From positions 1 to 64,000 of IMG/VR virus record IMGVR_UViG_3300005826_000294: a stretch of DNA of 64,000 nt; one strand, written 5' to 3'. The stretch's first letter is position 1, and every line of letters begins with the position of its first letter. The notes under the pieces were generated by a model. That model was not told the DNA's origin. It saw only the letters and a list, made by a program, of their open reading frames with translations, and ran no database searches. Position numbers and translations under genes: made by a program. Of the stretch, positions 1 to 51,877 are shown piece after piece.

Positions 1-63
1 GACCTAGACCAAGATTTACATAATTTTGGTTTCTTATATTTATTTTTCTTAAAAGGTTTTATT

Positions 64-240
64 TTAAAAATTCTTCGTTCCAAATTTAGATTTAGACCAA
101 GACCAAGGCCAAAATCCAGCCCAAGACCAAGACCAAGACCTAGACCAAGACCTAGACCTAGACCAAGACCAATACCAAGACCTAGACCAAGATTTACATC
201 TGTTTGGTTTCCTAAATTTATTTTTCCTAAAAGGTTTCAT
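64..240 (-). CDS. Basic Trp/Ser/Arg-repeat peptide (array unit)
   Basis: MKPFRKNKFRKPNRCKSWSRSW...SKFGTKNF; ATG 1 nt after the previous unit's TAA; paralogous units either side. Confidence 0.55.
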   Translation of the reverse strand: MKPFRKNKFRKPNRCKSWSRSWYWSWSRSRSWSRSWSWSWAGFWPWSWSKSKFGTKNF

Positions 241-241
241 T

Positions 242-394
242 TTAAAAATCCTTCGTTCCAAATTTAGATTTAGACCAAGACCTAGACTTAGACCAAGACC
301 AAGACCTAGACCAAGACCTAAACCAAAACCTAGACCAAGACCATGATTTACATGATCTTAGTTTCCTAATTTTACCTTTCTTAAAAGGTTTTAT
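242..394 (-). CDS. Trp/Ser/Arg-repeat peptide (array unit, ATA at the start position)
   Basis: IKPFKKGKIRKLRSCKSWSW...SKFGTKDF; start codon is ATA rather than ATG. Confidence 0.4.
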   Translation of the reverse strand: MKPFKKGKIRKLRSCKSWSWSRFWFRSWSRSWSWSKSRSWSKSKFGTKDF

Positions 395-410
395 TTTAAA
401 AATTCTTCGT

Positions 411-551
411 TCAATATCGAGATTTAATCCAAGACTCAAACCAAAACCTAGGCCAAGACCCACAAAATCTAGACTTATACCAAGATCTAGATCCAAACCA
501 CGATTTAAATAATTTCAATTTTCTAATTTTACTTTTCTTAAAAGGTTTCAT
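411..551 (-). CDS. Trp/Ser-repeat peptide (array unit, ends 5 codons early at TGA)
   Basis: MKPFKKSKIRKLKLFKSWFGSRSW...KSRY*; TGA stands where other units have GGA. Confidence 0.4.
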   Translation of the reverse strand: MKPFKKSKIRKLKLFKSWFGSRSWYKSRFCGSWPRFWFESWIKSRY

Positions 552-552
552 T

Positions 553-747
553 TTAAAAATTATTCGTTCCAAATTGAGATTTAATCCAAGACCAAGACCT
601 AGACTTAGACCAAGAATTAGACCAAGAATTAAGCCAAGACTTAGACCAAGACCCAGACCTAGACCAAGACCTAGACCAAGACCAAGACCAAGACCAAGAT
701 TTACATCTTTTTGGTTTTCTAATTTTACTTTTCTTAAAAGGTTTCAT
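553..747 (-). CDS. Trp/Ser/Arg-repeat peptide (array unit)
   Basis: MKPFKKSKIRKPKRCKSWSWSWSWSRSW...SQFGTNNF. Confidence 0.55.
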   Translation of the reverse strand: MKPFKKSKIRKPKRCKSWSWSWSWSRSWSRSGSWSKSWLNSWSNSWSKSRSWSWIKSQFGTNNF

Positions 748-911
748 TTTAAAAATTATTCGTTTCACATTGAGATTTAATCCAAGACCAAGTTAAAGAC
801 CAAAACCAAAATTCAGACCTAGACTGACACCAAGATTTACATAATTTTGGTTTTCTATATTTATTTTTTTAAAAAGTTTAAAAATTTAATTATATAAAAA
901 TATTTAATATA

Positions 912-1012: not shown

Positions 1013-1576
1013 CTACAAAACAGATTTATTCGATGCCCAAGTTGGAATACAAATCTGCTCTACTCCTTCAAAGCTTACAATCAAAGATCCTGGAATCTTT
1101 GATTCATGCTTTGTATTCTCAGATACAGCATCCCCTGTCTCATCAACTGCCCATACATCATGTAGAACCAATGATTGAACTCCTACTTTCTTTACTTTTC
1201 CACGATAAATCCAATTAAATCCCCAAACTGCTATATACCTGTCATCCCACTTTTCATCCTTTAAAACATCCTTCCATAGTCTTCCATTAATAGAACAATT
1301 TTCATTTGACTCATCCAATTTTGCATTGTTTGCAGCCCATGTTGGAATGCAAATTTGTTCAATAGAATCTAGATTTATAATTAGATCACTAGGAATCTTG
1401 GTCTCATGACTCACTTTTTGATCAGTTGCAAGACCTGTTTCTTCTACAGCATAAGGATCTCTTAAAGTAAGTGTTTGTGCATCTATATTACAAAGCTTTC
1501 CACGATAAACCCAATTCCAACTCCATACTGCAACATAACGACCCAAGAAATTTTCTTCACAAATAAACTCTTTCAT
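1013..1576 (-). CDS. Tandem Sm/LSm-like fold protein (two ~85-aa domains)
   Basis: Internal duplication RY(V/I)AVW..NW(V/I)YRGK...L.L.D..AV(E/D)ETG...HE(T/S)KIP..LI(I/V)...EQICIPTWA.N; AGGAG RBS before ATG 1576. Confidence 0.55.
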   Translation of the reverse strand: MKEFICEENFLGRYVAVWSWNWVYRGKLCNIDAQTLTLRDPYAVEETGLATDQKVSHETKIPSDLIINLDSIEQICIPTWAANNAKLDESNENCSINGRLWKDVLKDEKWDDRYIAVWGFNWIYRGKVKKVGVQSLVLHDVWAVDETGDAVSENTKHESKIPGSLIVSFEGVEQICIPTWASNKSVL

Positions 1577-1587
1577 TTTCTTTCTCC

Positions 1588-2742
1588 TTAAAAAACTTTT
1601 ACTATTCTTCCCCAAGGTGGGGTTCCACTACGATCTCTTTCACTCATCCATACAACAGGATATTGAGGCTTCTCTCCAAATGTTGCATGACAATCACTAA
1701 TTGCTACACAAACATCAATAATTCCTTTAAATTTATTAAAACCATCTGTTAATATAGTTCCTCCTCCTCCTTTCACATTTCCATATTTATATATATCTCT
1801 TATATTTTTAACATGGAAAAATGTTTGAACTTCTGTGTCAATTGATAAAAACCAAACATCTTTAAAATATTTACTAATATGTTTTACCTGAGATAAACAT
1901 TTATTTATTAATTCATTACTCATTGATCCTGATGTATCTAAAAGAATTCCAAGTCTTGACTCATATCCTTTAAGACCAGGATAAATTATATTACTTTGCC
2001 TCCTAGATAATTTAGCATATGAATAATCATCTTTACCTCTTGAACTATTGATGGAATTTTTTATTTTTAATCTAAAAATTTTCCTCCAATCTGCTTCTGG
2101 TTTAGAAAAGAACTCCTTTAGTTCAATTAATAAATTATTAGGAACATTTCCATGTTTTTCAGAATACTCCTTTATTAAAATTGCAGTTGTTCTTATAATG
2201 ATTTCTAAATCTTCTGGTGTAATTCCCTCTCCTGGTGTAATTCCCTCTCCTGGTATAGTTCCCTCTCCTTTATATTCTTCTACAAAAACATCCTGAATAA
2301 AAGATTTAAAATTTTCTTCAATATTATTTTTTAATTTTTCATAATAAAAATCTGCTGATTTAGATCTAGGAAAATTATAAGTTCTTGGATATAAAATTGG
2401 AAGACTACATGTAAATCCATATTGCTCCAAAATATCATTGTTATAAATATCAGAAGCCATATTAAATATTTTAGGAATTTTATTAGTTACTCTTTTAAAA
2501 TAATCTCCTAATAAATGAAGAATTTCATGTAATAATACAAACACCATATCTTCTTCATTTAATTTTAAACATTCTTCATTTATATGTAGAGTTCCTTTAT
2601 CTGAAATTGCCATATATGGAATTTTATTATTTATTACCGGCTTAATAATATAAAGTAAACTTGCCATATATGGTAATCTTTTTAAAGCTTTATATCTTAT
2701 TCTATATAAAAATTCATGACATTCTTTCTCCATTTTTGTCAT
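1588..2742 (-). CDS. VWA-domain protein with N-terminal HEXXH metallopeptidase (DUF2201-like)
   Basis: HEILH motif; MIDAS LLDTSGSM; GGGGT; SDC; downstream of a MoxR ATPase; GEGITP x3 linker. Confidence 0.85.
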   Translation of the reverse strand: MTKMEKECHEFLYRIRYKALKRLPYMASLLYIIKPVINNKIPYMAISDKGTLHINEECLKLNEEDMVFVLLHEILHLLGDYFKRVTNKIPKIFNMASDIYNNDILEQYGFTCSLPILYPRTYNFPRSKSADFYYEKLKNNIEENFKSFIQDVFVEEYKGEGTIPGEGITPGEGITPEDLEIIIRTTAILIKEYSEKHGNVPNNLLIELKEFFSKPEADWRKIFRLKIKNSINSSRGKDDYSYAKLSRRQSNIIYPGLKGYESRLGILLDTSGSMSNELINKCLSQVKHISKYFKDVWFLSIDTEVQTFFHVKNIRDIYKYGNVKGGGGTILTDGFNKFKGIIDVCVAISDCHATFGEKPQYPVVWMSERDRSGTPPWGRIVKVF

Positions 2743-3040
2743 ATTTTTCTCCTCGAATTAAATAATATCCATTTCCAAATTTAATTTTATTTATAGGAAT
2801 ATTTAATTTCTTAGAAATATTCTCCCTTTCATCAATAATCTTTGTTGCTGTTTTTTTATCTAAATATTTAATCATATCTTTGTTTTTTGCATCATCTAAA
2901 ACCTGTCCATATTTATTAACAATTAACTTATATAAAATTTTTTCTATATCATTGTTATACCAAGAAAATTCAAATATTTTTTTTAACCCATTCAAACCAC
3001 TAATCACGTCAATATTATTAATTATTTTTTCGTAATTCAT
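2714..3040 (-). CDS. Hypothetical protein
   Basis: ORF overlapping both neighbours in the operon. Confidence 0.6.
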   Translation of the reverse strand: MNYEKIINNIDVISGLNGLKKIFEFSWYNNDIEKILYKLIVNKYGQVLDDAKNKDMIKYLDKKTATKIIDERENISKKLNIPINKIKFGNGYYLIRGEKYDKNGERMS

Positions 3041-4077
3041 AGTTCTAATCCCTCAACCAGATTAAGAAACTCTTTAGAATTTCCTAAGTTCTTATTTAAT
3101 AGTTCCGTAACAACTTGAACTTTAATATCATTTATACTTATAGAAGACATCACCTCACAAAATTTAGGAACATGTTCATTATATTTAAAAACAAAACTCA
3201 AAGTAGCCATAATAGATGTGTAAATTTTATCTATCCTGTTTGGCATAGCATTTTTATATAAAATGTCAGTTGGAAGTGGAAGATCTAATTTCGCCATGTA
3301 CTCGTAAACTTCCTTTGTAATTCCTTCTCCAACACATCCTTTAATATAATCAAAAGCAGAAATTCTCTTTGTCCTACATGTTGCCCAAAGCCTACACGTC
3401 ATTTCCCATGATCTTGGTGAAGCAAATGATCTATCTTCAACATTTCCTTGAATATTATCTCTATTTGTTTTAAGATAATTAGTAATAATAGAAGTAACAT
3501 AACTATAATTTTCGTCCCATAGTTTTTTATCTATAGGAGAATAATCAACAACTTTTTGTTTATTGAATTGAAGGTAATCTCCAAACATTTCAACATCAGG
3601 TTTAAGATCAAAATGACAAAAACGATTGGCTAGTGGTGGTTCTAAATCTCCAGAATTTGCCCCCTCTTCTGCAGGGTTACATGCAGCAATAATTAAAGTG
3701 TCCTTTGGAAGAACAACCTCTCCTACAACTTTTTCACAAACAATTCTCAAAGCCGCTGCTTGAACAGCAGGAGGAGCACAATTTAGTTCGTCAAAAAATA
3801 AAATCCCACCATTATGTTTAACTAAATTATTAGCCCATGATGGTGGAAAAAGTTCAATTCCATTTTCTGTCCTTACTGGAAGACCACCTACATCTGCCGG
3901 ATCTCTAATACTTAAAATTACAACCTCACAATGAAGTCCCATTTGTTTTGCTATGGAAGAAATAATAGCACTTTTACCAATTCCAGGGGAACCCCAAAAT
4001 AATAGAGGAATCCCTCTTCCACCATCACTTCGTTGTGTAGCCCAACTGACTTCTATTGCTTTGCTTAGAATTTCCAT
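3037..4077 (-). CDS. MoxR-family AAA+ ATPase
   Basis: Walker A GSPGIGKS, Walker B LFFDELN, AACNP, ANRF, SPRSWE; likely start ATG 4077 after GGTGA. Confidence 0.85.
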   Translation of the reverse strand: MEILSKAIEVSWATQRSDGGRGIPLLFWGSPGIGKSAIISSIAKQMGLHCEVVILSIRDPADVGGLPVRTENGIELFPPSWANNLVKHNGGILFFDELNCAPPAVQAAALRIVCEKVVGEVVLPKDTLIIAACNPAEEGANSGDLEPPLANRFCHFDLKPDVEMFGDYLQFNKQKVVDYSPIDKKLWDENYSYVTSIITNYLKTNRDNIQGNVEDRSFASPRSWEMTCRLWATCRTKRISAFDYIKGCVGEGITKEVYEYMAKLDLPLPTDILYKNAMPNRIDKIYTSIMATLSFVFKYNEHVPKFCEVMSSISINDIKVQVVTELLNKNLGNSKEFLNLVEGLEL

Positions 4078-4101
4078 TACTTCACCTTTAAAATTTGTTT
4101 G

Positions 4102-4133
4102 TTTAAAAATTCTTCGTTCCAAATTGAGATTTA
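4102..4133. repeat. Solitary copy of the 32-bp array core motif
   Basis: 31/32 identical to the array copies at 63 and 552. Confidence 0.9.
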
Positions 4134-4140
4134 TTAAATA

Positions 4141-4217
4141 TAAGGTGTTTAGCTCAATTGAAAGAGCATCGGACAAAAAGATCCGGGAGATGTAGGTTCA
4201 ATTGAGCTGAACACCTT
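4141..4217 (+). ncRNA. tRNA-derived 21-bp hairpin in inverted orientation
   Basis: Arms 4141-4161 and 4197-4217 (one G-U on plus strand); 4141-4202 aligns with the tRNA-like gene at 12514-12586. Confidence 0.55.
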
Positions 4218-4234
4218 AGGTAATCGGTAATCCT

Positions 4235-4592: not shown

Positions 4593-4636
4593 GGTTTTTT
4601 TCCCAATTGATTTGTTGTTTATTAGATGTTCAATAG

Positions 4637-4709
4637 TAGGCCCGCAGGGATTTGAACCCTGAACCTTTTGGTTAAAAGCCAAATACTCTACCAGTTGAGT
4701 TACGGACCC
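4637..4709 (-). tRNA. tRNA-Lys(UUU)
   Basis: Cloverleaf; anticodon arm TTTGG-CTTTTAA-CCAAA; T-loop GTTCAAAT; no encoded CCA. Confidence 0.9.
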
Positions 4710-4716
4710 TAAAATT

Positions 4717-5046
4717 TTATCTATATATTCCCTTCTTTGAATTACACTTCATACAATAATGTCCTACTTCCTTTGATGAAGATATTTTCTTTTTTTGGAA
4801 TTTTGAAGAAAATTTTGTAAGAGTTATAGTAATAATATCTTTAACAACACATGGACATTCAACAATAAAAACTATAAATATAAAAACAATATATAATGGC
4901 CAAAAAATCCACCATACAATATCATTCTCAATTTCATATGGTTCGACCATTTTAAGTTTAATTTTATTACCAATTACTATAAAAATTAATGGTATGGTTA
5001 CATAACTAATTATACATATTAAAAAAATTATTGGATATAAAACCAT
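4717..5046 (-). CDS. Membrane protein with a C-terminal CxxC tail
   Basis: Two hydrophobic segments; tail SSSKEVGHYCMKCNSKKGIYR. Confidence 0.65.
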   Translation of the reverse strand: MVLYPIIFLICIISYVTIPLIFIVIGNKIKLKMVEPYEIENDIVWWIFWPLYIVFIFIVFIVECPCVVKDIITITLTKFSSKFQKKKISSSKEVGHYCMKCNSKKGIYR

Positions 5047-5100
5047 AAGAACCTCTGACTTGTTTAATTCACTAATATTTATCTTACATCTCGACCAACT

Positions 5101-5370
5101 TTACTTCTTTCCGCCAACCTCGATGATTTTTCCATTGTACCTATTATTAAACTCTTCCTCGCTTAATTTTTTTCCGTTTAAAAACCAAAATTTCTCTCCA
5201 TTAACATACTCAACAGCTGGACCATTTTCTCGATGATGTTTTCCATTTAAATACCATACTTTATATCCATTATTATATTCAATAGCTGGTCCATCTTCTC
5301 GATGATGCTTTCCTTCTTTATTAAACCACTCTGTTCTGTCTTTATATACTCTTACAATATATTCTTTCAT
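5101..5370 (-). CDS. HREDGPA-repeat protein
   Basis: Two GKHHRE(D/N)GPA(I/V)EY repeats; AGGAG RBS. Confidence 0.8.
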   Translation of the reverse strand: MKEYIVRVYKDRTEWFNKEGKHHREDGPAIEYNNGYKVWYLNGKHHRENGPAVEYVNGEKFWFLNGKKLSEEEFNNRYNGKIIEVGGKK

Positions 5371-5379
5371 CTTAAACTC

Positions 5380-5754
5380 CTACCGATTTACCTTATGTAA
5401 AAACACATCTTCACTATAATATCCGTTTGATATTCCAAACCACCGAAGTGTCACTGTTCCTTTAATTGTTGAAATATGATAAAAAGTCCATGTTTCTTCA
5501 TCATATTCTACATTATAATTAAGATCATAATTAGATGGAGATCTCCCCCTATTTGATCTTTCTAATGCATGTATAATTGGTGTTCCAATAAGATCTTCTA
5601 GATCTCCGCAAATATCTTCTAATCAAACCTCTTCACAACAATCTTAGTCATGAAACATTTTATAATGATCATCGCCTATGAAATGTAGAGTATCTCCGTC
5701 TTTGTAAATCTTATGAAATGTCTTATCAATCAAAGTTTCAAATGAAACTATCAT
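5380..5754 (-). pseudogene. Conserved phage protein (H-x-QDCCE...TWTFY...WFG.SNGYYS type) broken by two in-frame stops
   Basis: A single frame of 125 codons with TAA at 5644-5646 and TGA at 5623-5625; no frameshift. Confidence 0.7.
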
Positions 5755-5768
5755 CGTTTTCTCCTTTA

Positions 5769-5841
5769 TAGGTGCGCAGGGACTTGAACCCTGAACCTTC
5801 TGGTTAAAAGCCGGATACTTTTCCAATTGAGTTACGAACCC
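5769..5841 (-). tRNA. tRNA-Lys(UUU), one mismatch each in the acceptor and anticodon stems
   Basis: Paralog of 4637-4709; loop CTTTTAA. Confidence 0.7.
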
Positions 5842-5848
5842 TAAAATT

Positions 5849-6394
5849 TTATCTATAAATCCCTTTTTTCGGATTACACTTCATACAATAATGTCTTACT
5901 TCCTTTGGTGAAGATATTTCCTTTACATGTGGGATACTGTTTCTCGGATCCAGACATGTCTCAGTCAGGGTTGCCCCTCGCAGATTCGCACTTATCAGAT
6001 TCGCGCCGTCCAGATCCGCGCCGGTCATATCCGCGCCTCGCAAATCCGCGGAGGTCAAGTCCGCGCCGGTCAGATCCGCGCCGGACAGATACGCCCATTG
6101 CAGATTCGCCCATCGCAGACACGCACCTCGCAGATCCGCGCCGGACAGATCCGCGCGAGCCAGATCCGCGCCGGACAGTTTCGCGCCGAACAGATCCGCG
6201 CCGGACAGTTTCGCGTTGGCCAGAACCGCGTCTCGCAGTTTCGCGTTGGCCAGAACCGCGTCTCGCAGATCCGCGCCGGACAGTTTCGCGCCTTGCAGAT
6301 TCGCGTTGGCCAGATCCGCGCCTTGCAGATTCGCGCCTCGCAGATCCGAGCCTGGCCTGATATTGTACTCGCGACCATTTATCGTCCTCTTCAC
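5849..6394 (-). CDS. Pentapeptide-repeat protein fused to the C-terminus of the 4717-5046 protein
   Basis: A(D/N)L.G repeats; ends ISSPKEVRHYCMKCNPKKGIYR. Confidence 0.85.
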   Translation of the reverse strand: MKRTINGREYNIRPGSDLRGANLQGADLANANLQGAKLSGADLRDAVLANAKLRDAVLANAKLSGADLFGAKLSGADLARADLSGADLRGACLRWANLQWAYLSGADLTGADLTSADLRGADMTGADLDGANLISANLRGATLTETCLDPRNSIPHVKEISSPKEVRHYCMKCNPKKGIYR

Positions 6395-7113
6395 CCTAGC
6401 ACCTCCAGTTTCCTACATCTCCACTTATTGCTTGTCCTGTGCAGATCTTCCCTCCTGCACCTGACACGTACGATACTTCGATCAGGGTATTTTTTTCCTA
6501 TCCATTCCCTACTCGCTAGGTAGATTCCGGGGTGACACTTTGTGTCAGACGTGGAGAAATAAGGGGCTGTGTATTCTCCAGGTGTGTAATGTGTGTCTCC
6601 AACCTCAGTAGACCTCTCGGTCCGCCAGCCGTAGATCCAGTCGTCACCCCCGATCTCGAGTCCTCCTCCGAGTATCTCTGCGTCTGTCACGCGTGGGATA
6701 CTGTTGCTCGGATCCAGACATGTCTTAGTCAGATCCGCGCCGGTCATATCCGCGCCTCGCAAATCCGCGGAGGTCAAGTCCGCGCCGGTCAGATCCGCGC
6801 CTCGCAGATCTGCGGAGGTCAGATCCGCGCCGGTCAGATCCGAGTCGGCCAGACCCGCGAAGGTCAAGTCCGCGCCGGTCAGATCCGCGCCTCGCAGATC
6901 CGCTCCGGTCATATCCGCGCCTCGCAGATTCGCGTGTCGCAGATCCGCGTTGGTCAGATACGCGCCTCGCAGATTTGCGTCTCGTAGATCCGCGCCGGCC
7001 AGATACGCTTGTCGCAGATCCCTCCATTGCAGATTCGCCCGTCGCAGATCCGCGCATCGTAGATTTGCGCCTGGCTTGATATTGTACTCGCGACCATTTA
7101 TCGTCCTCTTCAC
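6391..7113 (-). CDS. Pentapeptide-repeat protein with a C-terminal domain (CHPGIYLA motif)
   Basis: ADLTG/ADLRG repeats; 4-bp overlaps with both neighbours. Confidence 0.9.
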   Translation of the reverse strand: MKRTINGREYNIKPGANLRCADLRRANLQWRDLRQAYLAGADLRDANLRGAYLTNADLRHANLRGADMTGADLRGADLTGADLTFAGLADSDLTGADLTSADLRGADLTGADLTSADLRGADMTGADLTKTCLDPSNSIPRVTDAEILGGGLEIGGDDWIYGWRTERSTEVGDTHYTPGEYTAPYFSTSDTKCHPGIYLASREWIGKKYPDRSIVRVRCRREDLHRTSNKWRCRKLEVLG

Positions 7114-7547
7114 CCTAGCACCTCCAGTTTCCTACATCTCCACTTATCTCCTGCCTTGTGCAGATTTTTCCTTCTGCATCTCACACGCACGATACGTCGC
7201 CTGGGGTAGTTTTTTTCCAACCATTCCCTGCTAGAGAGGTAGAGACCAGGATTACGCTTTGTATTAGATGTAGAGAAATAAGGGGCTGTGTGTTTCCCTA
7301 AGATGTAATATGTTCTCCCGGATGTGACTGACTTCTCCACCCGCCATCCGTAGACCCAGCATGTGTCGCTGATGGACATTTCTGTCAGGTATGACTCGCG
7401 GAAGTTCGCCCAACGCAGATTCGCCCTAATGAGGTCTATCCCGCTGAAGTCTGACTCGCAGAGGTATGACTTGCGAAAATCCATACAACGCAGGTCCGCC
7501 CTCGGATAAATTTCGTACTCAACTCCGTTTTTATTTTTGATCTTCAT
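7110..7547 (-). CDS. Degenerate pentapeptide-repeat paralog with the same C-terminal domain
   Basis: Shares YGWR...TAPYFSTS...KWRCRKLEVLG with 6391-7113. Confidence 0.75.
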   Translation of the reverse strand: MKIKNKNGVEYEIYPRADLRCMDFRKSYLCESDFSGIDLIRANLRWANFRESYLTEMSISDTCWVYGWRVEKSVTSGRTYYILGKHTAPYFSTSNTKRNPGLYLSSREWLEKNYPRRRIVRVRCRRKNLHKAGDKWRCRKLEVLG

Positions 7548-7769
7548 TCGTTCACATACCTTTGATGAAATGTTTTACCAACTAAAGTTTTAATAAAAAA
7601 TCATTTTCATGATTTTTTTTTGGTTGTTTTACTATATTATTTTTAAAATTTTAAAACTTACTCATCTACTTTTAAATTTAATTTGATATATTTCTGTGTA
7701 TCAATAATAAATATATGTTCACTATAATACACCAATCTATATTCATTGTTTTTTCTTATTAAATATAAA

Positions 7770-7842
7770 TTGGTTCAATAGGACTTGAACCTACAATTTT
7801 CCGATTATGAACTGGGAGCTCTACCAATTTAACTATGAACCA
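7770..7842 (-). tRNA. tRNA with CAU anticodon (Met-like), degenerate anticodon stem
   Basis: Acceptor TGGTTCA/TGAACCA and T arm GTAGG-TTCAAGT-CCTAT intact; anticodon stem has two mismatches. Confidence 0.55.
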
Positions 7843-7864
7843 TAAACCTATTAAATTATGAATT

Positions 7865-8314
7865 CTACAACAACTTCAATTCTACAGATATTTTCAAATC
7901 TTTGTTGTTCTCCAGTTCTTTCACCATTTCTCGAATATCTTCGGGAAGAGCTTTTCCGCAATATGTATTATTCTGTTTTTGTAACTCCTTTACTAGTGCT
8001 ACGGTTTCTTTCAAACCTTTTTTAGTATAGTTTCTTATTATTTTTACTGTTTCAGAAAAAATGACTTCACCTACAAAAGTCATATAGAATGCAACCTTAT
8101 TTTTGTCCAATTTTTCTTTCTGAACCGAAACTTTGTCTTGAAAACGATTTATTTGATACTCATCTGCAGCCGACAATCCAACGACCTCAGTGACCTTTTT
8201 CTGAATCAATTCCAAAAACTTCTTGGCTTCCTAATTCTCAACCAACTTACCATTGATCTCCCAAAACTTCATGGAATTCAACATCACAGAAATGGATACC
8301 AACAAATCATACAT
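7865..8314 (-). CDS. Ribosomal protein bL12 (L7/L12)-like, with an in-frame TAG at codon 28
   Basis: ELIQKKVTEVVGLSAA resembles the bL12 N-domain/hinge; VKIIRNYTKKGLKETVALV resembles the bL12 CTD; AAGGAG RBS before ATG 8314; TAG at 8231-8233. Confidence 0.55.
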
Positions 8315-8334
8315 TTTTTCTCTCCTTGATTTAG

Positions 8335-8399
8335 TACCACAGTAGAATTCGGACCTACATGCCCTTTAATTCCGTCACTAGCCATTAGGCTACCGTGAC
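8335..8399 (-). pseudogene. Decayed tRNA-Leu-like remnant
   Basis: Shares CACGGTAGC and GTGGTACTAA ends with 9715-9773; arms scrambled. Confidence 0.4.
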
Positions 8400-8464
8400 T
8401 AACTATTTATCAAAAAATATTCTATACTTCCTATTTAAATAACTGAATTACAAATCAGTTTAAT

Positions 8465-8500
8465 ATTGACGGAGAAGGAATCGAACATCATTTCCATCAA
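8465..8500 (-). ncRNA. Degenerate acceptor/T-arm minihelix
   Basis: TTGATGGA...TTCGATTCCTTC-TCCGTCAA; paralog of 10911-10953. Confidence 0.35.
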
Positions 8501-8674
8501 AAACCAGATCCAAGCTAAAACAAACCACACGACGTTTGATGATAAACGTTTTTCCTCTTCGTTTATAAACACTTACATGTATTAATTGATACCACTAAGT
8601 TATAAAAGTATACGAATATGAATTTATACGCCCTTTTGGAAAAAAATTTTCTATAACAAAATTGGGATTAGTGA

Positions 8675-8736
8675 TGAAACCTGCTGGAGTCGAACCAGCT
8701 TCCGCCTTGGCGCTGTCCCATTGACAGATAGGTTTC
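8675..8736 (-). ncRNA. 62-nt tRNA-like RNA lacking a normal anticodon arm
   Basis: GAAACCT-AT-CTGTC-AATGG-GACAG-CGCC-AA-GGCG-GAA-GCTGG-TTCGACT-CCAGC-AGGTTTC-A; all stems perfectly paired. Confidence 0.7.
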
Positions 8737-8776
8737 GATTGAAATTATTTAATCAGTCAACTAATCAGTCAACTAA

Positions 8777-9331
8777 TCAGTCGGTATAACTATCTGTTAA
8801 GATATAAGTTCCGCAGTCCATTACACCCCAAGGTGGAAGACCAAAATATTGAAGAATAATGCGACGCTCCTCTTTCGAAAAAGGCGCATTACTTCTCTTC
8901 TTAATTTTAGAAGAATACTGATGAGTATATTTTCTGGTTTCGAGCATCAGAAGACTATCAACAATCAACTTCCGTTCAGCTTGCTCAACTTTCCAGACTT
9001 CCGCCTTTTTATGATGTTCTTCATTCGCAGCATCCCATTTGGCTTTGATGATTTTTGATGCCCTGTGAACAGCATCTTCATCCATGAAGTCTGTGTCAAT
9101 TGGCAACCAAGCACCTCTACCATCAATCCATACACCCGTTTCCACATGGCCAAATGAACAGGTTTCGATCTCTTTGTCGATTAAAACAGGCACAGTCATT
9201 CCAACTTCCATTTTATGACGATTAGAATTAATAAGGATAACCTTACCCTCAGAGAAAGCAACCCACCTATCTCCTCGCCTGGAGATATATTTGATGACTA
9301 CAACTACTGACCACATTGGACGAAGATTCAT
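8777..9331 (-). CDS. Hypothetical protein
   Basis: GAGGAG RBS; 184 aa. Confidence 0.7.
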   Translation of the reverse strand: MNLRPMWSVVVVIKYISRRGDRWVAFSEGKVILINSNRHKMEVGMTVPVLIDKEIETCSFGHVETGVWIDGRGAWLPIDTDFMDEDAVHRASKIIKAKWDAANEEHHKKAEVWKVEQAERKLIVDSLLMLETRKYTHQYSSKIKKRSNAPFSKEERRIILQYFGLPPWGVMDCGTYILTDSYTD

Positions 9332-9389
9332 CTTTTACTCCTCTTGCTGTTGATATGGTTCTATTATGTTATATATTATTATGGTGTTG

Positions 9390-9614
9390 TTATCTTATAG
9401 AGACATGTACACATATATATGTATACTTATCTATATATCTTTGGTTATACGAAATTTTCCAAAAAACTAACTCTACTACGTAAGTACCCCATGGGTCCCC
9501 TATTTCCCCAAACGATTTTACGGGTTCCCCGGAACTTTCTTCACTTGGCTTATAAGATTTGTTTTTGTAAGTAAATAAAGGATCATGACCAAAAAAACCA
9601 TGATCCGGAGTCAT
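9390..9614 (-). CDS. Hypothetical small ORF; decayed paralog at ~12285-12503
   Basis: Shared TAGAGACATGTACACATA and VELxF..xxYN segments. Confidence 0.35.
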   Translation of the reverse strand: MTPDHGFFGHDPLFTYKNKSYKPSEESSGEPVKSFGEIGDPWGTYVVELVFWKISYNQRYIDKYTYICVHVSIR

Positions 9615-9625
9615 AAAAATTATAT

Positions 9626-9701
9626 TGGTGAGAGCGGAGGGGTTCGAACCCTCGACCTACAGATTAAAAGTCTGTTGCTCTTCCAGCTGAGCTACACTCC
9701 C
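9626..9701 (-). tRNA. tRNA-Lys(UUU) with encoded CCA
   Basis: Canonical cloverleaf; ACAGA-CTTTTAA-TCTGT. Confidence 0.95.
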
Positions 9702-9714
9702 ATAAAAATCTTAG

Positions 9715-9773
9715 TACCACGGGTGGGATTCGAACCCACACTGAACGGATTTTAAGTCCGTTGCTACCGTGGT
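9715..9773 (-). tRNA. D-armless tRNA-Leu(UAA)-like RNA
   Basis: ACCACGG/CCGTGGT acceptor; AACGGA-CTTAAAA-TCCGTT; GTGGG-TTCGAAT-CCCAC; only TAGC between acceptor and anticodon arm. Confidence 0.65.
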
Positions 9774-9780
9774 TAAACTT

Positions 9781-10263
9781 CTACACTATTATCTCCCAAC
9801 CCTTCATTCTCATTTTTTCCTCCCTCTTGTCAGTACACCTAATAAGTTTACGGGCTTTACCATTCCTTATGTTTTCAAGTATCTTTGGAACACTTAAATA
9901 ATCTAGAAAAGAGTTTAATCCATATCTGTTTAGTCGCAATGTATTAATATCGAAATCCGGAGAGAACACCAGATTTGACACTACATCAATTTGCATCTGT
10001 TCATCTCCGTGAACAACAAACCTTTCAAGATGAATACTATTATCATAATTACTACAATAATATTCAAGTGCCAAAACTCCAAATGACCCAAAATGACGTA
10101 GCAAAAACTTCTTAAAACTAAATCGATATTTTGGATCGATACAACAATCGATGTCATTTGTTGACTTACCGGCAATTGTGTCTCGTACATAACCTCCAAA
10201 CACAAAACCAAAGTTGTTAGCAATTTCATTTACGAGTTCTTTTTTATCCATGATGGCCTCCAC
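9781..10263 (-). CDS. Minimal nucleotidyltransferase (CCA/poly(A) polymerase head-like)
   Basis: FGGYVRD...DID catalytic motif and DFDIN (RDFTIN-like). Confidence 0.7.
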   Translation of the reverse strand: MEAIMDKKELVNEIANNFGFVFGGYVRDTIAGKSTNDIDCCIDPKYRFSFKKFLLRHFGSFGVLALEYYCSNYDNSIHLERFVVHGDEQMQIDVVSNLVFSPDFDINTLRLNRYGLNSFLDYLSVPKILENIRNGKARKLIRCTDKREEKMRMKGWEIIV

Positions 10264-10272
10264 ATATGGTGA

Positions 10273-10344
10273 TACTCCGGGTGGGACTTGAACCCACGCT
10301 CTGTCGCTTATAAGGCGACTGCTTTACCACTAAGCTACCGGAGT
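10273..10344 (-). tRNA. tRNA-Ile(UAU)
   Basis: Perfect cloverleaf; GTCGC-CTTATAA-GCGAC. Confidence 0.9.
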
Positions 10345-10352
10345 TCTTTAAC

Positions 10353-10655
10353 TTAAAGTTCAGGAAGAAGATCTTTCAATACTTCCCAATTCTTATTCCT
10401 TGGCATACTCTTTCCCGTTTCCCAAAGGGAAATCGTTACATTAGAAACTCCCACTAACTCTGCAAATTCTGCCTGAGAAAACTTGTGGTGTTTCCTTAAC
10501 TTCCTAAGCCGTGAAGAAAAGTCGTTTGTGCAAAGTTTTCTAGAAATAACTTCACACTTTCTTTCCTTTAAAAGACGATTCATTTTCTCGGCCGCGGCAA
10601 TACGAACCTCAATTGGTAAGTTCATATCATTTTGAGCCTTTAATAACTCTTCCAT
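10353..10655 (-). CDS. XRE-family HTH transcription regulator
   Basis: LRKLRK...SQAEFAELVGVSNVTISLWETGKSMP. Confidence 0.85.
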   Translation of the reverse strand: MEELLKAQNDMNLPIEVRIAAAEKMNRLLKERKCEVISRKLCTNDFSSRLRKLRKHHKFSQAEFAELVGVSNVTISLWETGKSMPRNKNWEVLKDLLPEL

Positions 10656-10665
10656 TGTGGCCTCC

Positions 10666-10863
10666 TTAACACATTCCTGTACATGCCCGGTGATACTCTT
10701 CCTCGATCTTACTCATTATTTTTGTTGCCTCCCTTACTCCACTACACTTCCTCTCTTCCAAAATGTTATTACCCTGAATAACTTTAACGGTTTTGCCGTT
10801 GTAAATAAAATTCAAATTAAACAATGCAACTTCTCTCTTGATGATTTCCATTGTCTCCTCCAT
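10666..10863 (-). CDS. Hypothetical protein
   Basis: ORF co-directional with neighbours. Confidence 0.5.
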   Translation of the reverse strand: MEETMEIIKREVALFNLNFIYNGKTVKVIQGNNILEERKCSGVREATKIMSKIEEEYHRACTGMC

Positions 10864-10910
10864 TTTGTGGTTCCTTAATGAACAAATAAAATATTCATCA
10901 TATTTTTAAT

Positions 10911-10953
10911 ATTGACGAAGAAGGAATCGAACCTTCATAAACCATTTCGTCAA
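10911..10953 (-). ncRNA. 43-nt tRNA minihelix (acceptor stem plus T arm only)
   Basis: GTTGACGAA-ATGGTTAT-GAAGG-TTCGATT-CCTTC-TTCGTCAAT. Confidence 0.55.
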
Positions 10954-10961
10954 CCTTTTAA

Positions 10962-11798
10962 TTAAATAGACTTAAACAATAATCTATTCAAATCTTCCAT
11001 CGAAAGTCTCTCCTTCGTTTTTGCGATAAATCCGCCCGGATGGGCGAATAATACTTCCTCTTCATTAACAATCTTAGAAAAGTCTACCTTAGGGTGATCG
11101 TTAAATCTATATAGTGACCATCCTTCCCCCCTATTGTCATAGGAAACCATTGCTCCAGCATTAGGATATTGAGTCTTTTGAATATATGAAACTACACCCA
11201 TATCTGAATTAGAAAGTCCTTTTTCTACAATCAAAACATCCACTCCATTAAGCCAAATAAAATTAATTTCTTCCTTCAAACTTTCCATCCCCTTATACCA
11301 TTCCTCCGCGTTCTTTACCAGTTGCTCTCCAATCATGGAAAGCATAGTATAAAGATCACTTCCTACCTCAATATTTCTCTTTTTTGAAACCATATTCATA
11401 ATTGCTTCATCGACCGGAGACCAAAGACTATCAGTCCAATCATTTGGAAGACCAAGTCTCTTGGCGACCTGGAATGGACCTTTGCTATCCATTTCCATGG
11501 ATGTATCCCACCACATCAAAGAACTAAAACACTTATAAAGACTTGGAAATACTCCTAAGAGAAAATACCCAAACCCCCACGCCGGGTCATCGTCCCTTTT
11601 AAGTTGATGATGATCATAATTATTCAATTTAGGTTCGTGCTGATTCCCAACATCGACTACTAATACCTCAGGATCATTCAACTCTTCCTCTGTAGGATCC
11701 CTACGGAAAATGGAAATCGCCATCTTGAAGGCCACAATGGCCATTGTAAGAAAATCATCTCGATGTGTTGGACCTGAATGTACAATCAACTTTTTCAT
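10962..11798 (-). CDS. MYG1-family (DHH-like) exonuclease
   Basis: HSGPTHRDD, VVDVG, YDHHQ, LFAHPGGFIA; likely start MKKLIV. Confidence 0.8.
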   Translation of the reverse strand: MKKLIVHSGPTHRDDFLTMAIVAFKMAISIFRRDPTEEELNDPEVLVVDVGNQHEPKLNNYDHHQLKRDDDPAWGFGYFLLGVFPSLYKCFSSLMWWDTSMEMDSKGPFQVAKRLGLPNDWTDSLWSPVDEAIMNMVSKKRNIEVGSDLYTMLSMIGEQLVKNAEEWYKGMESLKEEINFIWLNGVDVLIVEKGLSNSDMGVVSYIQKTQYPNAGAMVSYDNRGEGWSLYRFNDHPKVDFSKIVNEEEVLFAHPGGFIAKTKERLSMEDLNRLLFKSI

Positions 11799-12188
11799 TG
11801 TCTTTCCTTTCGCGTTGTTGTGTTGATTTAAAAATCTATCCGCAACGATCCCATCCGGATCCACATGGACATTCATAGTGCCCGTTTTGTCTATTGTTGT
11901 CTAGATAATTAAAATAATAATCATACAACAAATCTTTCACTTCCTTCTCAGACATGCTTTTAAGAAGCGAAAGACTTATAACTTCTCTATTTTGCAAACT
12001 TCACAAACCCAAGTTTTTCAAGAATCTTTGAAGCTTTGGTTATTCCAACCGTCCCACAAACTTTGTTACAAATCTTGATTGCCTTTTCTGCGTTAATTTT
12101 TCTTTACTTTTTCTACTGATTTACACGCAGTTTTGAAAAAAAATTTTTTTATATAAAAATCAGTATTTTGATTTTAATGAGATCTTAT

Positions 12189-12245
12189 TCTATTATCTCT
12201 AATATAGTGAAATCTATAAGACTTGAACATATTAGAGATAATAGA
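12189..12245. terminator. 17-bp perfect inverted repeat
   Basis: TCTATTATCTCTAATAT / ATATTAGAGATAATAGA with a 23-nt loop. Confidence 0.45.
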
Positions 12246-12513
12246 TTAGAATAACATATTTCTGTTATTATAGTGTTATTGTCTCGTAGAGACATGTACA
12301 CATACACATATCTATATGCCTTTAGTTATACGGCATTTGGCAAAAAATTAATTCTACTATGTGACCACCCCCGCCCCTCGTATATACACCTGATATTGCT
12401 CAGGTTTCTTGGGCCCACCCTCGTTTGAAAATAATGATCTTTTCGTGTAAGGTCCTAAAATTACAAAAGATCATTGTCCAAAGGACAAATGATCCAGCGC
12501 CATGATCTTTTAA

Positions 12514-12586
12514 CGGTGTTGTGGGAATCGAACCCACGTCTTTCGAGTCTTTCTGCTCGACGCTCTTCCAGTTGAGCTAAACACCT
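12514..12586 (-). tRNA. Atypical tRNA-like gene with an 8-nt anticodon loop (CAGAAAGA, Phe-like)
   Basis: D, anticodon (TCGAG/CTCGA) and T arms intact; 6-bp acceptor; A33 instead of U33. Confidence 0.6.
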
Positions 12587-12629
12587 TACATTTTTCTACT
12601 CCTGAACAATATTGAAATTATATGGTGGT

Positions 12630-13001
12630 TTAAACATCATCGGTGAAACTAAACCTGCATTTTTTACAGGTAATTGTTTCTATGTGTCTATTTTTACCAA
12701 GGGATAAAATAAGTATCCCAAGGCCAACACAACCAAGAGGTAAGGTAAGTGTCCCAACCCCATTACCACCAAGAAACAGAACAAGTGCCCCAAGCCTATC
12801 AAGGGACAAGATAGTCCCTAGCCTAGTGCTCCCAATGGATAGACCAACCGAGAATAAGGCCCAAAGTAACCCCATGATTATCAAAACACAAGAAATGAAT
12901 AGTGATCCCGTTGGAACCACATTACGTCGACGTCGATGTAAATCTACATCTACTCCTGCTTCCGAACATTTAGGACAATTTCTGATGTCTGATATATCCA
13001 T
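12630..13001 (-). CDS. Membrane protein with a split CxxC...CxxC zinc ribbon
   Basis: CPKC, hydrophobic segments, CKKC. Confidence 0.7.
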   Translation of the reverse strand: MDISDIRNCPKCSEAGVDVDLHRRRRNVVPTGSLFISCVLIIMGLLWALFSVGLSIGSTRLGTILSLDRLGALVLFLGGNGVGTLTLPLGCVGLGILILSLGKNRHIETITCKKCRFSFTDDV

Positions 13002-13207
13002 AAACTTCTCTCTTTCAAGTTGAGATTGTTTTCCATGTAATCCTTTATGTTATTTCATCAATCCCCTTTCTTTTGCTATGTAATTAGCCCCCTTACACCC
13101 TTTTGAAAACTTAGGTTTCTGGATACTGCTTCCCGCCATACGACGACTTGGTCGGCAAATAGTAACCATGACTTCCTGACCATTGATAATCGTCTTCCCT
13201 TTCTATA

Positions 13208-13280
13208 TGAGAGCGGTGGGGCTCGAACCCACGACCTACAGATTAAAAGTCTGTTGCTCTTCCAACTGAGCTACGCTCCC
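13208..13280 (-). tRNA. tRNA-Lys(UUU)
   Basis: Canonical cloverleaf; near-identical to 9626-9701. Confidence 0.95.
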
Positions 13281-13309
13281 GAAGTAATCTCTATGATCTT
13301 TTGGAAAAC

Positions 13310-13524
13310 TTAATTCCCCTAGGGGAAAATGCTTCTTTTCCCAAAATGCTATCACTATGCTTGCTACTTGATAGTAGGTTGCTATACACTTACTATAATA
13401 CTGCTGTATTCTTCACAAGCATTTTACTGGGGGGTTTTAAAACTTTCCCATACAGCAAAATGCTAAGTGCTTGTAATCATTAGGGGCAGGTTCAAAGAGC
13501 CAAAACCCCCTAGAGAAATTAAAC
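13310..13524 (-). ncRNA. 215-nt structured element, copy 1
   Basis: Near-identical to 13936-14150; the ends form a 16-bp helix with two G-U pairs on the minus strand. Confidence 0.65.
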
Positions 13525-13528
13525 TTAG

Positions 13529-13600
13529 CGGGACTGACGGGGATCGAACCCGCCTCGCCGGATCGACAGTCCGGAGGCCTCACCAGATGCCTACAGTCCC
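13529..13600 (-). tRNA. tRNA-Asp(GUC)
   Basis: CCGGA-CTGTCGA-TCCGG; acceptor GGGACTG/CAGTCCC. Confidence 0.9.
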
Positions 13601-13610
13601 AATAAAATAA

Positions 13611-13694
13611 TGCCTGAGGTGGGACTCGAACCCACATGCTCATAAGAACGGCAGATTTTAAGTCTGCTGTGTATGCCAATTCCACCACTCAGGC
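13611..13694 (-). tRNA. tRNA-Leu(UAA)
   Basis: GCAGA-CTTAAAA-TCTGC; long variable arm. Confidence 0.95.
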
Positions 13695-13727
13695 ATAGCA
13701 GTTTATACTTATGCTGAGGAGTTATAA

Positions 13728-39405: not shown

Positions 39406-39735
39406 TTATTTCTCCAATTTTTGTAAATGTTTTGCCCAAGAGTCAATATGGATTTCATAATACCAATTAGGCTTATCTTTTATTAATATAAGTCTAGGAA
39501 CTTTCCATTGAGCTACAATCTCATCATTCTTATAAACATCTAAAGCTCCATCATAATTGTTCCAAACTTCTATGTTTGAAGATGAAAGATGCTCTTTCAT
39601 ATCTTCCATGTCCAATTCAAATAATTGTTCAGAAATTCCCAAAGCTAAAAGAACTTCAACTAACCAATCATGCTTTTCTTCCTCTATAACTTTCTGTTCA
39701 TCTCCCCTATCTGCTAAAACCAACATTATCCACAC
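39406..39735 (-). CDS. Hypothetical protein
   Basis: ORF track. Confidence 0.65.
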   Translation of the reverse strand: MWIMLVLADRGDEQKVIEEEKHDWLVEVLLALGISEQLFELDMEDMKEHLSSSNIEVWNNYDGALDVYKNDEIVAQWKVPRLILIKDKPNWYYEIHIDSWAKHLQKLEK

Positions 39736-42700: not shown

Positions 42701-43103
42701 CATCTTCAATCTTTGTAACATAACAATTAGTGTAAGTTGCCTTATTAATATACTTATTTCCCAAAGCAAACATTTGCCTGCCTGCTGGTAAAAAATATTC
42801 ATATAATTCACGAAAATAACCTACTTTTTTTTTACCATTTGGAAACTCATTTTCTGCGGAAACTATACATTCTGCCCATCTGTCTTTTGCTTCTTCCAAA
42901 GTAAATTCAATTATCTTATTATCACCATCTCGAAGAGCATATTTTTTATAGAAAACAGATGTAGCAATTTCATCACCGCCAAAAGACTTTAAGGTTTTCA
43001 ATACATTTTCTCTATTTAGACCGCAATTATTTAATTCTGTATCAGATAAAATCCTATCTATTGTGGAACCAATATCATCATTTAAATAAATTAAGTTATT
43101 CAT
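39726..43103 (-). CDS. nrdJ: Ribonucleotide reductase large subunit (class II NrdJ-like) containing an intein
   Basis: PAGRQM, NCY, GGGIG, RRGA, NP/CGEQ split by the intein, TIAPNG, C-terminal zinc ribbon; no nrdB in the window. Confidence 0.85.
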   Translation of the reverse strand: MNNLIYLNDDIGSTIDRILSDTELNNCGLNRENVLKTLKSFGGDEIATSVFYKKYALRDGDNKIIEFTLEEAKDRWAECIVSAENEFPNGKKKVGYFRELYEYFLPAGRQMFALGNKYINKATYTNCYVTKIEDDSLEGIFNAAKKLAHTYSYGGGIGLCIGELRPEDSKVSNSAKFSTGAVSFMDLYSLTTGLVGQHGRRGALMITIPVNHPDIEKFVEMKHNNIDKVKYANISIKLTDDFMMAVENDDDFTLSFETYHETIKRTIKARDLWKKIILSARDSAEPGLLFWTKMVEMSPSDSYERLKVHSTNPCVVGDTLVYVADGRNNVSIKQLAEEGKDVPVFCFDNDEKISIRNMRNPRITGYNQPVYKITFDDGNHLKVTNNHKFRLKNGSYRRTDELKKGDSLRIITRFENDSKFISNVSNEELKQHAVLLTKELGCMFSNEDWIKYARNNKITEQFPKWRNDHLGGILGLSKWAFNKCGLNNIDLDPINKKYYLELLEQGYNCIIRDKKIFIIKNCEICGKEYEIHHSRRESGICSRKCRSVYMGNINSGYKSKEYTDKENQLKAYTDLKFKLSREPRKKEWEQYCNENNVIQTLKFNFKQLKESALDYNHRVVSVEFCGYENVYNGTVDEFHNFFTGAFESTTPFGKRKWFYFNNLNCGEQILENGGTCVLSSLLLHKFVKNPFTDQAEFDFELFGEMISRGVRHLDNVVQLNIGKHALAEQEEASVSGRRIGLGLTGLADMFVSLKIKYDSDEAIQFADKLMEFKKLHEYDASIELAKLRGPFPLYDPNIHFSRGFCATLPEELKQKAKENGLRNVAISTIAPNGSLSIIAQCSGGAEPIFAFSYTRNVMLGKEEKKEFSVYHQGISRFFNIVGKQDLPEYWVTAHDIDYQHRVKLQGVLQKHIDASISSTINLPADVSPEVVSQIYMDAWREGLKGITVYREGSREGVLVTEKFAKKKTPNMDTITRCVRAEGGDKFYIMISYKDKNIKHPYQVFVLNYKKKESDSFIKTSNALIKMLSNQGVAEDRIQKYIDRSNNSLTRLTRFLSLSMKTNNLDKAVDILDSNSYAGSLSARLCNILSESLDMRKVLCEKCGSSNIRMEEGCMSCLDCGESRCG
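41112..42164 (-). mobile_element. 351-aa intein in the RNR active-site loop
   Basis: Starts CVVGDTLV, TNNHKF block B, VYNGTV block F, ends NNLN before Cys+1. Confidence 0.88.
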
Positions 43104-50446: not shown

Positions 50447-50719
50447 ATTTTTTCTCCTATATCCCATTATACGAAACTAGAATTCAAAATTCAACGCAAT
50501 TTTGGAAAAAATTATTCAAGAACAATAATATTAAATTTGTTATTTGAGTTAGATAAAGCACAATATCTATGATAACCATCAATTATCCTATATTTTTTAT
50601 CATCTTTTATATAAACTCCAATTGGATATTTATAATCCTTATATTTTTCAACAATCTGTTTATCTAATTTTCTATAATGTTCTAGATTTGGAATTACTAA
50701 ATCATCTAAACCGACTGTT

Positions 50720-51709: not shown

Positions 51710-51877
51710 TTAACCTTGTTTTTTATCATCAATAACTAATTTTACATCCATATTTTGCCACTCTCTTATAATTCTCTGTCTCCACGTTGGATCTGTAACT
51801 TCCATTTCCAAATAAACTTGACCTGTATCCGTATTTACCTTTACATTTAAAAGTCTAGCAATTTCTATTTCAACCAT
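51710..51877 (-). CDS. 55-aa hypothetical protein missed by the ORF track
   Basis: MVEIEIARLLNVKVNTDTGQVYLEMEV...; GGAG RBS. Confidence 0.55.
   Translation of the reverse strand: MVEIEIARLLNVKVNTDTGQVYLEMEVTDPTWRQRIIREWQNMDVKLVIDDKKQG

Follow-up and report, generated by a model that had tools for sequence, protein, structure and literature searches.

What is served by a run of head-to-tail mini-genes that share their ends and differ hypervariably in their cores? The question is raised by positions 1–885 of the window analyzed here (64,000 nucleotides, the first 64 kb of the single 301,683-bp IMG/VR virus record IMGVR_UViG_3300005826_000294, which derives from a jumbo phage of 29.9% G+C), where six such units lie on the minus strand. 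Sequence comparisons show that this array is a tandem amplification of small protein-coding genes, and that it represents the locally, greatly amplified form of a two-part module found in many environmental phages, in which a gene for an Sm-like protein has behind it, in the same orientation, one to three genes for peptides with Ser at every second position (hereafter X-Ser peptides). Our best overall explanation, to which we would give about an even chance, is that the array consists of amplified mini-genes whose products would serve as nucleic-acid-binding partners of the Sm-like protein. The interest of the locus lies less in the array than in the widespread, undescribed phage gene pair it revealed.

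Each unit is built from a constant head (M/I-KPFKKNKxRKPKxCKSW), a tract of TGGTCT, AGGTCT, and GGGTCT hexamers, and a constant tail (SW-I/S-KS-Q/K-FGTKNF) that ends in TAA. Every junction between units reads AAT TTT TAA – A – AT(G/A) AAA CCT, and this stop-A-start packing fits translational coupling. Units 1 (552–747; 64 residues, isoelectric point ~12, net charge +15) and 4 (63–240; 58 residues) are intact mini-genes beginning with ATG; unit 2 (395–551) also has ATG and runs into a premature TGA four codons ahead of the usual stop, giving a 46-residue product; unit 3 (241–394) has ATA instead of ATG and is otherwise intact; and unit 5 (1–62), with an ATA head, is cut by the contig end. At the start of the array, the degenerate unit 0 (748–882, 135 nucleotides) has no start codon, a frame-shifting 1-nucleotide deletion, and an internal stop, and is likely a 5′ leader or a pseudogene. 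The successive periods are 135 (unit 0) and then 196, 157, 154, and 178; the initial annotation had these last four values and the 1-nucleotide gap from stop to start right, as it did the two ATA starts (units 3 and 5) and the one early stop (unit 2), all of which we find on the minus strand. Both the hexamer tracts and the array are picked up by Tandem Repeats Finder, the latter at periods of 178 and 154 with scores of 546 and 553, and a chance pattern is ruled out. Elsewhere in the 301,683-bp record there is no copy of the unit except an isolated 32-nucleotide remnant of a 3′ end (...KSQFGTKNF-stop; 4102–4133, minus strand), ~25 nucleotides upstream of the gene for a MoxR-like AAA ATPase.

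The array gene products (45–75 residues, with the head MKPFKKNKxRKPKxCKSW, a hypervariable core and a short tail) are intrinsically disordered and strongly cationic. The position that alternates with Ser in the core is mostly Trp, Arg, Gly, or Lys, and the core is encoded by NGG-TCT hexamers; peptides from the window are 17–19% Trp, carry a net charge of +15 and have no acidic residues, and the Atlas structure model of the peptide (predicted local distance difference test, pLDDT, of 0.42) corresponds to disorder. Slippage and unequal crossing-over expand and contract the hexamer tracts, giving rise to many different peptides.

We then asked which frame, if any, is read. The initial annotation had taken array periods of the form 3n+1 as a sign of selection on the peptide, a conclusion that stands on other grounds than the one offered: unit lengths are 3n+1 in 33 of 37 full units and 6n+4 in 29 of them, and 3n+1 is weak evidence because slippage by whole hexamers keeps the frame without any selection. 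Selection at the peptide level is instead borne out by three features. Of the 37 full units, 30 keep the Trp/Ser frame open up to a terminal stop, as against 7 for the best other frame (antisense Arg-Pro); there is a single stop among the 154 tract codons one step from TGG, where the expectation is ~2/9; and the Ser codons differ between phages, as set out below. The underlying codon counts (TCT 397, TGG 266, AGG 90, TTT 56, and GGG 40) are inflated by hexamer copying and are not independent events. The ATA and truncated units had been read as a sign either of decay or of a function residing in the RNA; they look like genes decaying in the ordinary way within an amplified family, and the second suggestion is not supported, ATG being retained in ~40 of 44 unit heads. 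The antisense Arg-Pro frame was considered as coding and rejected, as it has stops in most units, is without start codons, and is lost where another Ser codon is used (since TCA reads there as a TGA stop). Taken with the comparison across phages below, this evidence makes the Trp/Ser frame the coding frame and the peptide the selected product.

The array does not end with the window. Positions 82–1 are identical to nucleotides 1–82 of the Joint Genome Institute contig 3300005826 Ga0074477_1727307 (21,519 bp), and the shared 82 nucleotides include the unusual ATA unit (unit 5, complete on that contig). Because these identical nucleotides join two contig termini, Ga0074477_1727307 is most likely the continuation of the same genome, the assembly having broken inside the repeat; comparisons between window and continuation contig are therefore comparisons of paralogues and not independent evidence. 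There, the first array proceeds for five more complete units and one truncated unit, and the contig as a whole carries ~38 unit heads spread over at least six arrays, which all lie on one strand (also that of all neighboring genes) and have genes for tRNA-Lys, tRNA-Leu, and tRNA-Arg(UCU) between them. The genome thus holds at least 43 units. The initial annotation missed both this larger family, of which the array at 1–885 is the edge, and the conserved Sm-like partner described below. No second Sm-like gene is present on the 21.5-kb continuation contig. Proteins similar to unit 1 were found, among 5.8 billion clusters, only on this same contig; exact and IUPAC-coded scans for the unit junction in viral and metagenome contigs gave 0 matches, blastn of the array against GenBank phages gave no match, and searches of Pfam, PHROG, and Atlas with the peptides returned nothing informative and no curated family. 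Metagenome assemblies break at arrays of this kind, which are therefore probably larger and more widespread than they seem.

The gene next upstream of the array (1013–1576, minus strand, with an AAGGAG Shine–Dalgarno site 8 nucleotides ahead of the ATG at 1576) encodes a 187-residue protein that we describe as Sm–Sm, with two tandem predicted Sm-like (LSm-fold) domains. Each half aligns to single-domain proteins of ~85 residues (29% identity; E 6e-9 and 1e-4). The 187-residue protein has no Pfam match above threshold (the best, LSM14, has E 0.11 and 13 bits against a cut-off of 30), and its single-domain homologue has neither a Pfam match nor a PHROG. An AlphaFold2 model of the ~85-residue family, built on a 23-sequence alignment (pLDDT 89.8, predicted template modeling score 0.78), was compared with the PDB using Foldseek; almost all of the 50 matches listed are Sm, LSm, or archaeal SmAP proteins (probability 1.0, template modeling score 0.6–0.83), LSm4 and SmD3 among them, and the AFDB clusters reached by Foldseek also point to the Sm/LSm fold. 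The model has the bent β-barrel of five or six strands, the N-terminal helix, and the superposability on Sm/LSm structures that define the fold, and we are confident in predicting an Sm/LSm fold for the family. At the level of the model, the phage partner would thus be an Sm protein by structure but a member of no sequence family. Its relatives are numerous (at least 6,577 clusters at 90% identity, E ≤ 1e-5), nearly all of ~85 residues, and unnamed.

Evidence that Sm-like and X-Ser genes belong together comes from other phages. A profile of peptides of the window type, run against 1.84 billion proteins, recovered the units of their own genome and one outside peptide (P0126, from the ENA contig L007, E 1.8e-5). 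On L007 a single-domain Sm-like homologue (29% identity, E 6e-9) is followed 18 nucleotides on by a 68-residue peptide whose head and tail differ from those of the window units and whose core is of the same kind. Peptides with other heads are of low complexity and escape sequence searches, and were found by synteny. The whole 187-residue protein found no related locus as a query; an alignment of three Sm-like domains retrieved 29 IMG/VR loci and one GenBank match (MW202825.1, an uncultured phage), and the comparison set comprises 31 loci (151 kb, 1,021 open reading frames (ORFs) of at least 30 residues, contigs of 31–63% G+C).

In these 31 loci every one of the 37 alternate-Ser ORFs shares the strand of the Sm-like gene and has its start at most ~1 kb past the end of that gene, with none elsewhere; 24 of the 27 evaluable loci have such an ORF within 800 nucleotides of the Sm-like gene, a figure that rises to 25 with L030. 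Some loci have two or three X-Ser genes in tandem, and an ATGA stop/start overlap occurs in L012, L029, L035, and MW202825. The peptides are of 35–96 residues, with isoelectric points of 9–12 and net charges of +5 to +18 in nearly all loci (that of L009, with an isoelectric point of 5.2, is near neutral). Most loci use TCT for the Ser of the repeat, whereas L035 uses TCA, L019 TCG, L029 TCC, and L030 and L012 AGC/AGT; it is therefore the residue that is conserved and not the DNA word, even across the change from TCN to AGY, and the antisense of this codon reads Arg, stop, Arg, Gly, and Ala across the loci. Two close relatives capture the process of variation: L009 has one 96-residue peptide; in L014 there are three genes, and the product of one lacks four SECWSG repeats (18 nucleotides each), and with them 24 residues; the Sm-like proteins of the two differ at 2 residues. 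The slippage-made peptide library proposed in the initial annotation is upheld by this pair, which differs by four 18-nucleotide repeats and in gene copy number, and whole-repeat length changes between copies and relatives identify the locus as slippage-prone simple sequence.

How might the two components work together? Sm and LSm proteins are RNA-binding rings, and the eukaryotic Sm/LSm and SR proteins bind RNA or partners via tails of Arg-Gly or Arg-Ser dipeptide repeats. Because the phage partner has the fold of an RNA-binding ring and its eukaryotic kin use such tails, we infer that, during infection, the X-Ser peptides most likely serve the Sm-like protein as basic, low-complexity partners that bind nucleic acid (probably RNA), and that repeat length and composition would tune this binding. 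The closest comparison is with Sm/LSm/Hfq proteins bearing basic dipeptide-repeat tails (the RG tails of SmB/D1/D3 and LSm4, and the RS domains of SR proteins), with which the phage pair shares the Sm fold of the partner and basic disordered Arg/Ser/Gly dipeptide repeats. It differs in that the phage repeat is a separate small polypeptide rather than being fused to the Sm domain, in that Trp is a major residue of the repeat, and in that the partner lacks sequence-level membership. A second likeness, that of a small phage protein with a predicted LSm-like fold, is to T4 GoF, MotB.1, and Frd.2 of the Tevenvirinae, small early products suspected of a role in RNA stability (PMC12152347). The abstract and headings of that description mention no X-Ser peptide partner, and we saw no sequence relation between the Tevenvirinae proteins and the present family, which has no PHROG.

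Several observations weigh against a role as partners of the Sm-like protein, or against the coding argument beneath it. Most unit copies are not adjacent to an Sm-like gene. Two strong hairpins from a terminator-like scan lie between the Sm–Sm gene and the array on the minus strand (1003–972, 14 bp, terminator-like; 974–912, 21 bp), the RNA fold of 912–1003 reaching −44.1 kcal/mol (z = −9.7 against shuffles), and directly upstream of the array is a sigma-70-like promoter match on the same strand (889–918, TTAAGA-18-TATAAT, 10/12, a consensus match only); with this hairpin pair and a possible promoter of its own, the coupling of the array to the Sm gene looks looser here than in small phages. 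(Promoter-like sites in the region overall are no more frequent than in its shuffles, and a sigma-70 promoter within each junction was considered and discarded, the hexamer spacing being too short in the unit consensus.) Complex prediction of three copies of Sm–Sm with the peptide gave a score of 0.02 and a peptide pLDDT of ~30, which is no answer either way, and the Sm fold is also used by proteins without RNA binding. The constant parts of the units vary without concentration at third codon positions, a pattern that fits diversifying or concerted evolution and is not the classic signature of purifying selection. Finally, depth in RNA libraries is not proof of expression, because these depths sum many organisms.

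That last point applies to transcript data which would otherwise be suggestive. Contigs matching the X-Ser tracts of L020 (3315–3600) reach summed depths of hundreds to ~1,800 in four marine and marsh RNA libraries (X4, X5, X6, and X11, two of the four DNase-treated), where the flanking Sm-like gene has depths of 0–18; such depth is compatible with high expression and is not proof of transcription or translation. Exact pieces of the window (1013–1734, 2978–3898, and 4782–5111) are present at low depth in estuary metatranscriptomes. Metatranscriptomes from marine, marsh, and estuary sites also contain short contigs of NGGTCT hexamers in great abundance (window 124–195 and 643–699 in X2 and X3), some with flanks other than those of this phage and some adjoining Illumina adapter sequence.

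A bolder extension of the same idea, which we put forward tentatively as possible and on balance unlikely, is that of an undescribed two-component system in many aquatic phages, in which an Sm-like ring protein would use hypervariable X-Ser peptides as detachable, fast-evolving “tails” to capture or condense host or phage RNA, or to counter RNA-based defence, with a library of at least 43 slippage-made variants in the present genome. For the jumbo phage's library, simple-sequence contingency loci offer an analogue: in both, tracts change by whole repeats (here hexamers, between paralogues and close relatives), whereas the phage changes are in-frame and diversify a product with no on/off switching, and the variation occurs within a multi-copy phage gene family. 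A literature search, whose coverage was not exhaustive, brought up no account of a module that pairs an Sm-like protein with X-Ser peptides; we rate the pair as not assignable to a known kind, its mechanism being our proposal. Short phage ORFs of low complexity are usually dismissed as noise or as repeats, and one class of them is real here, because ORF integrity, stop avoidance and a residue pattern kept across phages despite codon turnover all attest to it. The pairing provides a testable handle on the role of the phage Sm-like protein and on how slippage can be used to diversify a protein partner. With 43 copies amplified amid its tRNA genes, the jumbo phage furnishes an extreme natural experiment on this module.

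Two alternative functions for the peptides retain some plausibility, each of which we consider improbable. The first would make them a library of ribosomally synthesized and post-translationally modified peptide (RiPP) precursors, of leader–core(–follower) type, their hypervariable cores cross-linked or modified in some other way by a radical S-adenosylmethionine (SAM) enzyme encoded after the first array, in the manner of prochlorosins or of the HXS system. The gene in question (340 residues; 1471–2493 of the continuation contig, L002) begins ~350 nucleotides after that array, and its core resembles MoaA, PqqE, AlbA, SkfB, PapB, and the twitch/SPASM maturases (PDB matches, confined to the core, are to MoaA and SkfB with E 1e-8; NCBIfam scores are all far below cut-offs). 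On L007 a different radical-SAM gene lies 2.5 kb away from the one for the peptide, the unit has the expected conserved head and tail around a hypervariable core, with Cys15 nearly invariant, and a repeat effector matured by radical-SAM enzymes is known in bacteria (PMC13128918). The linkage between enzyme and peptide does not hold up across genomes: precursor and maturase genes, which are jointly conserved in RiPP systems, are not so here. The radical-SAM family is very conserved in its own right (60–73% identity, >3,500 proteins), with members in L004, L005, and L006 that have no X-Ser peptides or hexamer tracts nearby; any CxxxCxxC enzyme occurs within 3 kb in one of 30 independent Sm/X-Ser loci, and that one is of a different family (27% identical over the core). 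Furthermore, arrays lie at seven places in ~22 kb, so adjacency to one given gene is unsurprising, and the Cys is absent from most family members outside this phage. The enzyme family itself is a phage family; its members occur on contigs as long as 384 kb, some of which carry Gracilibacteria or Planctomycetota labels, and in L004–L006 its genes have an overlapping ORF of ~90–100 residues upstream.

The HXS system, a bacterial defence system in which HxsA, with His-Xaa-Ser repeats, is matured by the radical-SAM proteins HxsB and HxsC alongside HxsD (PMC13128918), illustrates where the resemblance stops. The array shares with it and with prochlorosin-type libraries, which rely on a single maturase, a set of many paralogous small genes with conserved ends and hypervariable cores, a short-period Ser repeat, and a radical-SAM gene beside one array; yet the phage repeat has a period of 2 (X-Ser) rather than 3 and no His, the peptides lack both a signal peptide and a peptidoglycan-binding domain, there is no HxsB, HxsC, or HxsD here (the HxsC4 model scores 44 bits against a cut-off of 500), and the radical-SAM enzyme is not conserved with the phage peptides. 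Both systems are analogies only, their defining features being absent from the array.

The second function, of equally low standing in our estimation, is that of membrane-active, Trp/Arg-rich cationic peptides (akin to indolicidin, tritrpticin, (RW)n, or “disruptins”) employed for lysis, host killing, or competitor exclusion. Composition is its strength, the 17–19% Trp, +15 charge, and lack of acidic residues of the window peptides being what such a function calls for; known Trp/Arg antimicrobial peptides have a composition like theirs. The surroundings and the relatives argue otherwise: the sequences contain no signal peptide, hydrophobic segment, or hydrophobic N-terminus, the neighbors are early and nucleotide-metabolism genes and tRNAs rather than a lysis cassette, and many related peptides are rich in Gly, Ser, and Arg and poor in Trp (L019) or, in some cases, near neutral (L009, isoelectric point 5.2). 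The strict linkage to an Sm-like gene would also be left unexplained.

Two further readings concern what is decoded rather than what it does, and we regard both as very improbable. In one, the units are fused into a single long polyprotein by +1 ribosomal frameshifting at each UUU-UAA-A junction (five U, four A), so that the ATA “starts” are irrelevant. A +1 shift at TTT-TAA does bring AAA-ATG-AAA-CCT into frame, the periods are 3n+1 and the junction is nearly invariant, including at third codon positions. A tRNA-like gene with an anticodon loop of 8 nucleotides, CAGAAAGA (12512–12587, minus strand; Infernal 50 bits), might help, its anticodon (called as GAAA by ARAGORN) being able to pair with UUUU or UUUC; this gene is without U33 and has a mismatched acceptor stem, and could be a quadruplet-decoding (UUUU/UUUC) tRNA or a pseudogene. 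Fusion is difficult to reconcile with the ATG kept in ~40 of 44 heads, expected only if each unit initiates alone, with the presence of the same ~22-nucleotide leader on array-initial units that have no preceding peptide, or with the peptides of other phages, which are single genes with their own starts. The other reading, a non-coding hexanucleotide microsatellite with conserved spacers that would work as DNA or RNA (protein-binding iterons, a centromere-like site, or a recombination hotspot) and in which ORFs are incidental, would accommodate the lack of third-position bias in the constant blocks, the silence of the commonest tract change (TGG to AGG or GGG) in the antisense Arg-Pro frame, and the breaking of contigs at arrays, but not ORF integrity specific to one frame with stops avoided and start codons conserved, nor an antisense frame without a start and with stops in most units, nor independent phages that keep the peptide while the hexamer word changes, including from TCN to AGY.

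CheckV puts completeness of the whole record at 75%, and the phage origin assumed in the initial annotation is confirmed by a ribonucleotide reductase, helicases, a PhuZ-like tubulin match, and nine tRNA genes in the first 14 kb. Every gene near the array lies on the minus strand, and the opposite end of the 301,683-bp contig opens with an unrelated cytosine methylase gene. Upstream of the Sm–Sm gene are, on that strand, a gene for a DUF2201 metallopeptidase/VWA-like protein (1588–2742, directly upstream), a 108-residue ORF (within 1588–4176), and the MoxR-like AAA ATPase gene (3037–4176). A long inverted repeat with 22-nucleotide arms (4141–4218, minus strand) lies a short way upstream of both the AAA ATPase gene and the unit-tail remnant, and its 5′ arm is similar to the 5′ half of the odd tRNA at 12587.

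The nine-gene tRNA cluster (4636–13695, minus strand) includes four copies of tRNA-Lys(UUU) as well as tRNA-Ile(UAU) and tRNA-Leu(UAA). A 59-nucleotide tRNA-like sequence (9715–9773, minus strand; 52 bits) has the anticodon loop CUUAAAA (UAA, Leu) and no D-arm; a full tRNA-Leu(UAA) on the continuation contig (L002 8149–8221) is ~90% identical to it over the common part. Three adjacent genes for pentapeptide-repeat proteins (5849–7547, minus strand; Pfam PF00805, E down to 1.7e-54) consist of strongly G+C-rich 15-nucleotide repeats within a genome of 30% G+C. Further along the minus strand, the large subunit of ribonucleotide reductase (39726–43103, 1,125 residues) is matched by PHROG profiles at residues 47–260 and 650–1125 only, and the ~400 residues left unmatched between these stretches point to an intein or some other insertion. 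Two paralogous ORFs of ~543 residues (48836–50467 and 51865–53499, minus strand) contain five or six copies of a 201–207-bp repeat, and the first of them, the only one of the pair scanned, matches HNH and endonuclease PHROGs.

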